DNA of 49,383 bases, filler included, from Bipalium vagum (Eukaryota), in the NCBI GenBank assembly GCA_037834085.1. It is 2 parts of 2 records of this genome, joined end to end, with 100 filler letters (N's around TTAATTAATTAA, not from the genome) between each part and the next. Parts side by side here need not be neighbours in the genome. Positions count along the whole stretch, not along the records: positions 22,415 to 49,383 come from JBBMKC010110038.1; 1 more part is not named here. One strand, written 5' to 3'. The notes beneath the pieces were generated by a model, which was given only the letters and a program-made list of their open reading frames with translations, ran no database searches and was not told the origin of the DNA. Below are positions 24,586 to 39,616 of the stretch, in pieces (within the stretch, counting starts at the first letter, position 1; every line of letters begins with the position of its first letter). The position numbers and the translations under genes are program-made.

Positions 24586-24717
24586 ATGTCACTGTCGCTC
24601 GTCTATCAGGACCCCACTGTGCCCAGTCAGTATATAGAGCGTTATAAGCTCGCTTATTTGATGCAGTTTTTCGTGCAACACAAGCAGCGATTCAAGTTTC
24701 CAAAAATTCGTTTACAG
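24586..24717 (+). CDS. BCL9: exon 1 (first half of DDT-like domain)
   Basis: GAAAATGT start context; YKLAYLMQFFVQHKQRFKFPKIRLQ; donor CAG|GTAACG. Confidence 0.85.
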
Positions 24718-27700
24718 GTAACGTGGTTATCAAACGATTTATGGCACTGCGAAATCTGTTATTATTTGGTTTGTTTGTTTTTTTTTATGTAGGATTTATT
24801 CAAATTGCTGGAGAACCAGGACTATCGACCCCTGGCCTATCTGGTGGTACAGATATTGCGGTTTTTGAAAATTCCAAACGCAACGATTTCCTCTGTTGAC
24901 AAAGCTCTGGACACGTTCAGCAATGAAAAGCGAACATCGACGCGAGTTAACATTCTCCAGTTGCGTGCCGGACGGCAGATTTTCAAATTGAATGCGGAAA
25001 ATAAAGCCAAATTGTTGGAAAATCTCATTGAAACGGTCTATGATGAATTACCTGATTTCAATTTCGCTCCCAACGGATTCAATAGCGGAAACAGTTCAAA
25101 CGGCACGAATAACCATTCCTTTTGCGGTGCTAACAAATTCGGCGACATTAAACAAGAAGATACCGCCGACGATTCAATGAATGAGCTGGCTATAAAGGCC
25201 GGTTCCGACTCCAAAGGCAGCAGTTACGTTTATTTGGACGGTAATTTATAATTCTTTTTCGTTTTTTTGTCGTATATTTCAAGATATTTTTGTTAAATAA
25301 AATAATTTTTTAATTAATTAGTATTTAACAACGTTTTATTATAAAATTTTCTTTAATTTATTTTTAATTAATCTATTTTTTTGAATATCAAAGATATTTA
25401 TTTTAATTGAAGCAAATTTTAAATATTTGGTTTTATTTTTTATTATTATTATTGATTATTTTTATTTAATTATTTTAAAGTGGTAATTTTTTTATTTTTA
25501 CTATTTTATCATTATATTGAAAAAATGCACTATTATCAATTAATTTTGATTTTTTCGAGATAATTCAACAAATTCTTGTTCAACTATTTATTATGTTAAT
25601 TGTAATATTTTACAATTCATTTTCTCTATTTTCACTAAATTTATAATTTCGATTTTTATTAATATTATACTTAACATTTTAATTTATTATTATTTTATTA
25701 TAAATAATTAACATAATATTTATTGAATTACTGAAATTCCCAACGGTTTACGAAGAGGGAATTCGGTCAAAGCTTTATTGCATGGATATTGACATGCAAT
25801 AATTGTTGAAAGTAATGTGAAATGTCACTTTTTCTCTTGTGCTAATTCTTCGTTTATTTATTTAAACAAAAAAATGAGACGGAAATATTTTGGAAAATAT
25901 TTATTTTATCTAGCTTTAATTTTTGAATGAGTTCTGTCAATTTGGTATATTTGTAGCTGAAAATTTTTATTATTTCTTTAATTTACAACAGATATTTTTG
26001 AAGTTTATTCTTAGTTATATTTTTATTGTTTTATTATTTTTCATTTTTATAAATATAATTAATTTTATTTTTATTTTTAAGTTTTCTTTTTAATTAATGA
26101 ATTTTGTATTTATTTTGAACATTTCCGCATAATTGTTATTGTATATTAATAATTATTAATTAATTCTTTGACATGTGTCAAACAAAGAGATCTGACACTA
26201 TTAATTATAAAATATTGATAATTTCATATTTTTGTTCATAAAAATTAAATGAGAAAATAAAAAATATAAGGAAAAAACGAGGAAAAGTTAGAAGAAAGAA
26301 AATTCAATTTTAAATAGAAATTTGACGGAAAATTTGTAAAAAATTGAAAAATAAAATAAGAGTCAATGAAAGAAGTGTAAAACATCAAAAAATGCATCAA
26401 TTTCTGTTTTGAATTATTCTCATTGATGAAAGCTGACAATACACTCTAGTAGACTTTACAGATAAATAAGTATCTTGGCTATTTATTTTTTTATCTTAAG
26501 TGCTTGAATATTAATTGATTTTATAGTTGACTGAATATTATAAAAGGACAAGTTTTGACAGATTGTCATGTATTCTATTTCTTTATTCCTATTCTTTTCT
26601 TTTTTATTTATTTAAATCTGAAACAACTTTTGAAGCTTAACATAAAATGATCTTCCTTATTCTTAATTTAATATCATTAATATTTCAAAAAAATTTAAAG
26701 CATTGATAAAATGATTTTGATAGGCTTAGTTGTTTTAAAAGTGGACCTGAAATTTTTGACCAATAATTTAATTTTCATTTTTATCCAACTATTTAATTTA
26801 CATTAGATTAGTAAAATATGTTACATTGGATTATGCATTAGCAAGTGTAAAGTTCGGGTGTTGTTTAAATTAAGCAATTACAAATGAAAACTGTGTCTTC
26901 AAAAATAGTTCTAACTGCCTAAAATAGTATTTTACGGTTCATTTTATTATTTCAACAGACAGAACAATACCTTTTTTTATTAAATACAAGATTTTCTTCC
27001 ATTATCACTTATTATCATTAGTTATATAAATAGTAACGGTTATAATAATTGTTTTATTGAAATGCTATATATATATATATTTAAGTTGGACACCAATGGA
27101 ACGAAAATTGTTATCCAATTTGTTAAGGTGAACAGTCTGCAGTTGTATGTTTCGTTTATATAGACCCTTTAATATTTAACATACTTTTTTTAATATACAA
27201 TCTAAAATAAAATATTTATCTTGTTATAGATTTGCGCCTTTATCGAGAGAAACCACAAAGTTCTCTTTCGGCTCAATGGGATGTTGTTGTTGGTCCAACT
27301 ATTGATCAATGGAGAGCTTTCATTAAATCTTTAGGACATGTCGATGAAGAAGGGGATTTAAGAGTTTTTCTTAAAGATCATTTGTTGGAAGTGGTTAGTA
27401 CGTCTTTGGATAGTGGCGAATTGTCTCAAGAAAATACGGAATTGTTCGTTTCCAATTTGCTAAGTAGAGAACGAAATGAATTAAATGGTTCTTTGGATTA
27501 TTATGGGACTGTATCAAATCCAAAATCACTACCAAATTGTGGTGGAAATATGTATGAAATTCAAGATAATGATGGTACTGGCAGTGGTGGTACACCCGCT
27601 GGCAACGTAGTGCCGAATAGTGCAGCAAATATGGAGTCTTCCAATGTGGCTGTTTCAGTTAAGTTAGAAATGACAGATACTTCAGGTATTAATTCTCAAA

Positions 27701-39100: not shown

Positions 39101-39616
39101 TCGTCATCAAATAATGTTAATATGTCCAAAACGAGTTCAAATAATCAAATGCATTCCATACAATCCCAACAAATTCAGGACAACCAAATGGCGGGCCATT
39201 ACAGTTCCCAGCCGCAAAATATGCCACTTTACAATTCCCAGTTTCCAGGTTATCGTCATCCAACGAATATGATTTCTCAACAACAGCAGCAGCAGCAATT
39301 ACAACAACAGCAACATAACAATCCAGTCATTCAACAACACCATAAACAGATTCCCCAATCCATTATCTCACAACCCCAGACCAATAACTTCATACCTAAT
39401 CATATTCCTCAAAGTCAGCTGACACAATCTCAACACCAATTCCCCGGTTCCCATGAGATTGTGCTGTCCCAGTTTCAGAATTATGCCAATCAGCAGCTTC
39501 CTGTCAACACCACCAACGCCAACAGTGCACAAGCCATTGCTGCCACCAACAATATCAGTGGAATGATTCCCGGAGTAAGCGTTCCAGCTGGACCCCAACA
39601 GACCCCATCAATTATG
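24586..39616 (+). CDS. BCL9: BCL9/Legless-like protein with N-terminal CECR2/RSF1-type DDT-WHIM module; at least 7 exons and 1355 aa, probably 3'-incomplete
   Basis: Exons 24586-24717, 24793-25240, 27230-27685, 29151-29480, 31420-32115, 35632-36737, 38720-39616; all GT-AG, phases 0,1,1,1,1,0, total 4065 nt with no internal stop. HD1-like MVFTTQMANDAAIEYARQRTSLYQFH, HD2-like LTQKQLENRKNKMAKLEQIQSTL, HD3-like AQRQWELLRMEYMREK. Confidence 0.82.
24793..25240 (+). CDS. BCL9: exon 2 (DDT end, WHIM1, GxD motif of WHIM2)
   Basis: Acceptor TTTTATGTAG; DLFKLLENQDYRPLAYLVVQILRFL, IFKLNAENKAKLLENLIE, GSDSKGSSYVYLD; donor G|GTAATT. Confidence 0.88.
27230..27685 (+). CDS. BCL9: exon 3 (WHIM2/WHIM3, WSD region)
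   Basis: Acceptor TTGTTATAG; DLRLYREK..WDVVVGPTIDQWRAFIKSL..EEGDLRVFLKDHLL; donor CAG|GTATTA. Confidence 0.88.
27766..27838 (-). pseudogene. tRNA-Ala-derived pseudogene or SINE head in intron 3
   Basis: 73 nt GGGGGTGTAGCTCAGCAGTCAGAGC...CCTGAGTTCGAGTCACAGTATCTTCA; A and B boxes, intact D stem, G3:U70, broken anticodon stem (anticodon position reads TAC). Confidence 0.8.
29151..29480 (+). CDS. BCL9: exon 4 (S/P/Q-rich linker)
   Basis: Acceptor CTTTACTCAG and donor CAG|GTTCGC; phase 1-1, in frame with both neighbours. Confidence 0.82.
29935..30113. repeat. degenerate (TTCTTATTTTATTTATTA)n minisatellite followed by (TAT)n
   Basis: Visible tandem units; produces the spurious ORF at 29867. Confidence 0.85.
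30533..31240 (-). mobile_element. highly decayed mariner in intron 4
   Basis: TA|TTAGGTGTGGGAATTAATTTCC TIR; minus-strand RIVTGDVKCVWFEK, SETVTGEQNQQLI, FRNMITTS remnants. Confidence 0.7.
31420..32115 (+). CDS. BCL9: exon 5 (BCL9 HD1 at 31539-31619, HD2 at 31698-31772)
   Basis: Tandem acceptor AAGCAG; HD1 and HD2 motifs; donor CCG|GTATTA. Confidence 0.9.
32610..33125 (+). mobile_element. internally deleted Tc1 (DD34E-type) element in intron 5
   Basis: EKRAIIHSYRSDRLSFREISRKV..YSETG..GRPRNGR joined to QSPDLNPIK..LQNLVSRMPRIVKAVLKANGG. Confidence 0.85.
33830..34445 (+). mobile_element. decayed mariner 3' portion in intron 5
   Basis: HEKSDI..YQWLP..QQRFGK, MLSVLWNFNGILFFEFLP; TIR-like AAAAACTTTATTTTTTATGGAACAAC. 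Confidence 0.7.
35632..36737 (+). CDS. BCL9: exon 6 (BCL9 HD3 at 35769-35822, P/M/H-rich region, polyQ, basic NLS-like patch)
   Basis: Acceptor TTCTCCACCAG; AQRQWELLRMEYMREK; SKSKTKKRKS; donor CAA|GTATGA. Confidence 0.9.
37930..38400 (-). mobile_element. Tc1/mariner-superfamily remnant in intron 6
   Basis: IEYSGRLRS linker and WWMHNNTPPHRS (QDNAPxH-like). Confidence 0.5.
38720..39616 (+). CDS. BCL9: exon 7 (S/Q/N-rich low-complexity region)
   Basis: Acceptor TCATTGCAG, phase 0; donor ATG|GTAAAT. Without splicing the frame would stop at 39649. Confidence 0.85.

Follow-up and report, generated by a model that had tools for sequence, protein, structure and literature searches.

The 49,383-nucleotide stretch of the Bipalium vagum genome analysed here (the window; assembly GCA_037834085.1, filler included) carries on its plus strand a gene that appears to encode a flatworm ortholog of the Wnt co-activator BCL9/Legless, made as one polypeptide with an N-terminal DDT-WHIM fold. 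We put the probability of this reading, proposed ISWI docking included, at about 0.72. An earlier note on this DNA had described the product as a chimeric protein, in which a CECR2/RSF1-type DDT-WHIM module is joined to homology domains 1, 2 and 3 (HD1, HD2 and HD3) of BCL9. Both parts do belong to one gene model, in flukes and tapeworms as well as in the window, but the chimera is not peculiar to B. vagum. A BCL9/Legless ortholog with a lineage-wide N-terminal module of DDT-WHIM fold is the probable identity of the locus, and the architecture is a feature of the phylum, not limited to the B. vagum genome and not a new kind of system.

Conservation of the Exons Across Flatworms

All similarity searches and Pfam scans of the window protein were run exon by exon. 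With exon 2 as the query, HMMER was run exhaustively over 1.84 billion representative proteins; it returned 12 matches, and every named one came from Platyhelminthes (Clonorchis, Opisthorchis, Paragonimus, Schistosoma, Echinostoma, Hydatigera, Hymenolepis and Dibothriocephalus). At the level detectable by sequence search, the N-terminal module is confined to this phylum. Several of the matched proteins are 1058-2272 residues long and have the matched segment at their N-terminus, and the ortholog entries in the databases are labeled "uncharacterized" or "unnamed".

Six exons, that is all except exon 4, matched single predicted proteins of about ten fluke and tapeworm species in the same order. 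When each exon was compared by BLASTP with six orthologs, exons 1, 2, 3, 5, 6 and 7 were colinear in the same protein, with E-values from 1e-31 to 1e-4; in the Clonorchis protein (P0006) they lie at residues 4-32, 44-213, 215-298, 646-686, 748-788 and 1091-1213, respectively. Colinear matches of this kind, exon by exon within single orthologs, are far beyond chance. Exon 1 aligned to ortholog residues 3-43, the HD1-HD2 block of exon 5 was 41-45% identical to the tapeworm orthologs, and exon 6 matched the fluke orthologs at the equivalent place downstream of HD2. A word-seeded search with the tapeworm HD1-HD2 region retrieved Hymenolepis relatives only.

Two further motifs are invariant in the flatworm orthologs. 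The first, LTSASLASLARLS(Q)(L/M)SG, is present in all of them at residues ~958-1380 and in exon 7 of the window, and the second, QITP.TPHTIQYLPT, lies further downstream in the orthologs and was not found in the window. They may be counterparts of the C-terminal homology blocks of BCL9.

At 90% identity, the Schistosoma ortholog (P0011) falls into one cluster with "proline dehydrogenase" and RING-type proteins of 230-730 residues, which suggests that some Schistosoma models, which are automatic, fuse or split the ortholog gene with its neighbors.

Gene Model and Exon Structure

The exons were re-derived from the list of open reading frames and from the sequence around each boundary, and they proved identical to the seven GT-AG exons with matching phases and a stop-free frame that had been proposed before (Table 1). 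The two junctions named earlier, 27685^29151 and 29480^31420, were found at the same sites, and all the sequence motifs quoted in the earlier note could be located in the window. The part of the window that holds the gene is AT-rich, with a GC content of ~16-40% per kilobase, and the introns are long. All six introns have GT-AG ends, the junction phases (0, 1, 1, 1, 1 and 0) agree on both sides, and a stop codon occurs in none of the seven exon pieces. The exon 3 donor reads G/GTATTA (a slash marks the exon edge) and is in phase 1. Exon 4 is the least certain of the seven exons. The least certain exon boundary is the exon 6 acceptor at 35654-55, which is the sole AG of a CAG run that is compatible with phase 1.

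The seven exons predict a protein of at least ~1350 residues. Exon 7 ends in a GT donor, and no later exons were found in 39617-49383 by a search for the motif TPHTIQYLP or by tblastn with the orthologs. Because of this donor and the absence of the C-terminal motif downstream, the gene model is considered incomplete at its 3' end, with the gene continuing past 49383.

The gene of Hymenolepis diminuta (L002) has a comparable layout, with seven coding blocks of similar sizes, including an exon of comparable size at the place of exon 4. Its introns 1 and 2 have codon positions and phases identical to those in the window, and its intron 3 has the same phase. At intron 1 (L002:3129-3131), H. diminuta has an apparent GC donor, CAG/GCACGT, compared with CAG/GTAACG in B. 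vagum.

One Gene or Two

From the sequence we infer a single transcript across the seven exons, and it is highly likely that one gene encodes both the N-terminal module and the BCL9 part. The alternative is that two adjacent genes were wrongly joined: a small DDT-WHIM protein made from exons 1-3, ending at the in-frame stop 27709-27711 that lies 8 codons beyond the exon 3 donor, and a separate BCL9-like gene starting at a Met of exon 4 or exon 5, ATG codons being present near the starts of both exons (29174 and 31425).

Two short genomic contigs of a closer relative (Logan run SRR33002330), in which exon 3 is 70% and exon 5 is 58% identical to the window, bear directly on this choice. The relative keeps the exon 3 acceptor and donor (AG/GTA) as well as the exon 5 acceptor and donor, and directly outside these splice sites the similarity collapses, with indels. 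The relative shares the exon 3 donor with the window but neither the read-through codons nor the stop 27709-27711; its frame stays open for ~36 further, unrelated codons. The intron before exon 5 interrupts an Asp codon, which reads GAT in the window and GAC in the relative, a synonymous change. The conserved splice sites, the collapse of similarity in the introns and the non-conserved stop therefore point to spliced internal exons, and not to the last exon of one gene next to the first exon of another. Furthermore, the introns that link the two parts are all in phase 1, a phase shared by intron 3 of H. diminuta, and the exons follow the same order with frame-compatible joining in flukes, tapeworms and B. 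vagum.

Some observations pull the other way, against a single polypeptide. Exon 4 showed no detectable similarity to the six orthologs by BLASTP. The one sequencing run in which this locus occurs includes the introns as well (99% of sampled words) and looks like DNA. The ortholog proteins are gene predictions, which can fuse adjacent genes, and helminth gene models are mostly automatic. The relative also has the Met that lies just inside exon 5, which makes a shorter, BCL9-only isoform possible. Taking both sides together, we regard two wrongly joined genes as improbable, and one gene spanning both parts is retained in what follows.

The Probable BCL9 Part: HD1-, HD2- and HD3-Like Motifs

The locus is very probably the flatworm ortholog of BCL9/Legless, because motif-level evidence was obtained for HD1, HD2 and HD3. 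The placement of these three domains in exons 5-6 by the earlier note finds support at this level, with PDB matches of a tapeworm ortholog for HD1, likeness to a human peptide for HD2 and an HD3-like helix. Within exon 5, conservation among flatworms is highest in MVFTT(E/Q)MANDAA...(F/Y)H and (L/V)TQ(E/K)Q(L/W)ENRK.K.A.LE.I..(L/F)(S/T)K, which correspond to the HD1-HD2 block, and this block is nearly invariant in the closer relative although exon 5 as a whole is so much more diverged there.

The HD1 of the window reads AMVFTTQMANDAA...QFH, and of the 13 residues in its core, 8 agree with the human chain, as judged by eye. The HD1 piece of a tapeworm ortholog with 41% identity to the window across HD1-HD2 was compared with 177,635 PDB sequences and matched only 3zpv_0 (Legless HD1) and 2vpb_B and 2vp7_B (human BCL9 HD1). 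The E-values were 0.6-1.2 each and thus marginal singly, but despite this the identity of the sole three matches is telling.

In HD2, the window sequence LTQKQLENRKNKMAKLEQIQSTLS is identical to the human HD2 peptide (PMC10311566) at 10 of 22 comparable positions, counted by eye. HD2 was found to be invariant across flatworms. Among the identical positions are the Arg and the Leu, Ile and Leu through which HD2 contacts beta-catenin in the BCL9/beta-catenin structure. The tapeworm HD2 piece, compared with the PDB, matched DEK, which was taken as a chance match, and no BCL9 HD2 chain.

The published HD3 is a ChiLS-contacting helix whose invariant Trp has Phe/Tyr downstream of it, and the description includes an aromatic doublet where the window has a single Tyr (PMC5352222). 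The HD3-like helix of exon 6, QRQWELLRMEYMREK, contains the Trp and a Tyr seven residues later, and it is common to flukes (QREWDRICLDYQREK; ELAQREWDRICLDYQREK). A search for the HD3 pattern in the tapeworm orthologs found none. Among the ESM Atlas feature neighbors of exon 5 there was a "BCL9 homolog" cluster, which carries PF11502 only.

A different view would be that the C-terminal part is not BCL9/Legless but a flatworm-specific Gln-rich co-regulator, with helices that resemble HD1-HD3 by chance or convergence. The negative searches fit such a view and weigh on the assignment to BCL9: with E allowed up to 10, the Pfam BCL9 model (PF11502) matched neither the window exons nor any of 8 orthologs, and no BCL9 chain was found in the PDB with the window's own HD1 and HD2 pieces, with exon 5 or with a nine-sequence flatworm profile. 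Fluke models without a recognizable HD1 can be added to these. The view is difficult to reconcile with the three motifs standing in canonical order, with the retrieval of BCL9 and Legless HD1 peptides only from so large a set, with the retention in HD2 of the Arg, Leu, Ile and Leu positions of the human beta-catenin-binding helix, and with the motif blocks being the most conserved parts of exon 5. Fly and human BCL9 themselves share little beyond short homology blocks, a likeness of the same level. We consider a chance or convergent resemblance very improbable, and the C-terminal part is treated below as BCL9/Legless.

The distribution of HD1 among the orthologs is uneven. In the fluke models (P0006, P0007 and P0026), HD2 and the HD3-like helix are kept, and HD1 was not recognized in the 160 residues before HD2 or elsewhere; it is present in tapeworms (P0009, P0012 and P0031) and in the window (Table 1). 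The absence from flukes could be a real loss or a missed exon.

The N-Terminal DDT-WHIM-Like Module

The orthologs share a conserved N-terminal block, EDPTVD..D.EKYRLAFLMQFFVQHK.RFRFPRLRLQDLYQ ... ARILRFL ... VDQALDRF..DKRT ... ARAALLDNLIESVYDEQPDF ... VLIKAGQDAQGCSYYYMDDLRLYRE.PQ...SS.WDVAVGPT..QW.AFI.SL....E.DL..FLK., and the window matches it across exons 1-3. The structure was modeled with AlphaFold2 on the Echinostoma ortholog (P0004, 616 residues), using an alignment of 18 rows in which the three window exons each had a row of their own. The model shows a helical bundle at residues 13-131, with a predicted local distance difference test (pLDDT) score of ~90 from residue 50, then a disordered loop, four strands at 206-243 and helices at 247-313.

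In an exhaustive structural search of 48,161 PDB chains, the best match of this model was yeast Ioc3 of the ISW1a complex (2y9z_B), with a Z of 9.5 and 231 aligned residues (model residues 14-292). Ioc3 was the sole structural match that spanned both halves of the module; the next ones were CH-domain bundles for the helical half or PH-like folds for the sheet. The four nearest clusters in an ESM Atlas shape search carried WHIM1; WSD; DDT, PHD and WSD; and WSD, WHIM1 and homeodomain, with 235-289 aligned residues. The language-model feature search of the same atlas with exon 2 led to WSD, WHIM1, DDT and "RSF1-like" clusters. At the start of the WHIM2 sheet a GxD signature is found, as GSD at 25201-25209 in the window and as GQD in all orthologs. 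Judging from the model, the N-terminal ~260 residues likely adopt a DDT-WHIM1-WHIM2-WHIM3 (WSD) fold. Structure comparison thus agrees with the DDT-WHIM half of the earlier label, "CECR2/RSF1-type DDT-WHIM", and the CECR2/RSF1 subtype was not established.

Several results tell against this assignment of the fold. The Pfam models DDT (PF02791), WHIM1 (PF15612) and WSD (PF15613) matched neither the window exons nor the orthologs at any E up to 10; the exon-wise scan splits the DDT region between exons 1 and 2, and the orthologs were scanned whole. A check of the spliced protein with the Pfam DDT, WHIM, WSD and BCL9 profiles had been put forward in the earlier note, which took the lack of a DDT/WHIM profile hit as a refutation of its claim; the scans by exon and of the orthologs gave no matches, and taken literally this result goes against it. 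The Z of 9.5 for Ioc3 is only 0.7 above that of unrelated CH-domain bundles, and helical models are known to reach such values. A Foldseek comparison of the P0004 model with the PDB gave nothing below E 1. The PDB sequence search with exon 2 returned noise only.

Whether a module of this fold would recruit ISWI is a separate matter. DDT-WHIM modules in ACF, NURF, RSF, CERF and ISW1a dock ISWI-family ATPases and/or linker DNA, and to our knowledge the DDT-WHIM proteins characterized so far are ISWI partners. By analogy with these, the chance that the N-terminal module recruits ISWI may be set at about even. A single gene could also encode a module without ISWI recruitment, either one that has diverged to serve linker DNA, nucleosomes or another subunit of the enhanceosome, or one that is a structural or autoregulatory element only. 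A sequence so diverged that no Pfam DDT or WHIM model recognizes it would suit such a module, as would the resemblance of the helical half alone to CH-domain bundles (Z 8-9) and the fact that WHIM modules contact linker DNA too. The GxD signature, for its part, is a hallmark of WHIM2 whose role in ISWI binding is unproven (PMC11789628). The structural neighbors argue in the opposite direction: the best full-length match, Ioc3, is found in complex with the HAND-SANT-SLIDE region of Isw1, and the four top Atlas clusters all come from ISWI-accessory families, in which partnership with ISWI is, as far as we know, the rule. A module without ISWI recruitment is on balance the less likely reading, and docking of an ISWI-family ATPase is kept as part of the proposed mechanism.

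Proposed Mechanism and Significance

In the mechanism that we propose, HD1 would bind the PHD finger of Pygopus, HD2 would bind beta-catenin and HD3 would contact the LDB/SSDP (ChiLS) core, all as in other animals; these are the contacts of the Wnt enhanceosome model (PMC5352222). Like Ioc3 in the structure of ISW1a, the N-terminal module would dock an ISWI-family ATPase, linker DNA or both, and nucleosome sliding would then reach beta-catenin/TCF enhancers directly. More tentatively, and at somewhat less than even odds, BCL9/Legless of Platyhelminthes may have acquired its own ISWI-docking DDT-WHIM module, a Rosetta-stone fusion that would build a nucleosome-sliding remodeller permanently into the Wnt enhanceosome.

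The usual view of BCL9/Legless is that of a pure adaptor, an intrinsically disordered scaffold with short binding motifs, and a folded domain of the remodeller type would alter what this scaffold can do. No description of a BCL9 with a DDT domain was found in the open literature, as the earlier note had supposed of this architecture, and no planarian or parasitic-flatworm BCL9/Legless was found described there either; the flatworm BCL9 orthologs seem never to have been recognized before. Their identification adds a missing component to the known Wnt toolkit of a phylum in which beta-catenin controls regeneration polarity, and it places a flatworm-specific domain in a pathway relevant to medically important parasites. 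If the proposed mechanism is true, it may be relevant to the way in which beta-catenin sets the head-tail axis, both in regenerating planarians and in parasite development. The fusion predicts ISWI at Wnt enhancers, a prediction that is directly testable.

Coordinates and Transposon Remnants

The exons are listed in Table 1 together with three decayed mariner/Tc1 remnants in the window. A partial DDE transposase lies within intron 5 (PF01359, E 1e-6), and downstream of exon 7 there are a Tc1/Sleeping-Beauty-like helix-turn-helix and a Mos1-type helix-turn-helix (PF17906, E 1e-12).

Table 1. Exons of the predicted BCL9/Legless gene and decayed transposon remnants in the Bipalium vagum window (a slash marks the exon edge).
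Feature	Position	Strand	Content
Exon 1	24586-24717	+	ATG start; first half of DDT-like helical region (24631-24717); phase 0 end, ...KIRLQ/GT
Exon 2	24793-25240	+	Second half of DDT-like region, WHIM1-like helices, low-complexity loop, first WHIM2 strands; phase 1 end
Exon 3	27230-27685	+	Rest of WHIM2 strands and WHIM3/WSD-like helices (conserved part 27232-27483), variable tail; phase 1
Exon 4	29151-29480	+	Linker rich in Ser, Gln and Pro; open frame; AG and GT sites in phase 1 at the two ends
Exon 5	31420-32115	+	HD1-like motif (31539-31619) and HD2-like helix (31704-31775)
Exon 6	35656-36737	+	HD3-like helix AAQRQWELLRMEYMREK (35766-35819), then Gln/His/Pro-rich region, basic Ser/Thr-rich stretch
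Exon 7	38720-39616	+	Flatworm motif LTSASLASLARLS (38984-39022) inside Gln-rich tail; GT donor at end
Mariner/Tc1 remnant	33966-34178	+	Decayed
Mariner/Tc1 remnant	42573-42812	-	Decayed
Mariner/Tc1 remnant	48184-48369	-	Decayed

Comparison With Known Systems

The flatworm protein resembles BCL9, BCL9L (B9L) and Legless in the order of its HD1-, HD2- and HD3-like motifs within a long disordered protein rich in Gln, Pro and Ser. At the level of motifs it has an HD1 core of the form VF(S/T)T(E/Q)(M/L)AN.(A/G)A followed by (F/Y)H, an HD2-like helix of the form L(S/T)Q.QLE.R...(L/M)..L..IQ..L, and an HD3-like helix with Trp and a downstream aromatic residue. It differs from them in a predicted folded N-terminal DDT-WHIM-like module of ~260-300 residues, and we know of no BCL9 of flies or vertebrates with such a module. 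In addition, HD1 and HD2 are ~25 residues apart in the window, compared with ~145 residues in human BCL9, the flatworm protein is unrecognized by the Pfam BCL9 model, and the fluke versions seem to be without HD1.

With the accessory subunits of ISWI (Ioc3; ACF1/BAZ1A, BAZ1B, RSF1, CECR2 and BPTF; plant RLT/DDW), the modeled module would share a helical DDT/WHIM1 bundle, a loop, a four-stranded WHIM2 sheet led by GxD and the WHIM3 helices, and its position at the extreme N-terminus is the same as in CECR2 and RSF1. In contrast to these subunits, the flatworm protein has no PHD finger, bromodomain, WAC, MBD or homeodomain downstream of the module but beta-catenin/Pygopus adaptor motifs instead, and its sequence is too diverged for the Pfam models.

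A tie between an ISWI complex and Wnt targets has a precedent in Drosophila, where NURF/ISWI acts on Wingless targets via Armadillo, according to work cited in a later article (Song et al., 2009, cited in PMC2947479). The flatworm protein would resemble the fly system in the functional tie of an ISWI complex to the beta-catenin transcription complex. In the fly, separate proteins are tied in this way, whereas the flatworm tie would be covalent, within one polypeptide, and the fusion, if true, makes explicit the looser NURF-Armadillo link of flies.

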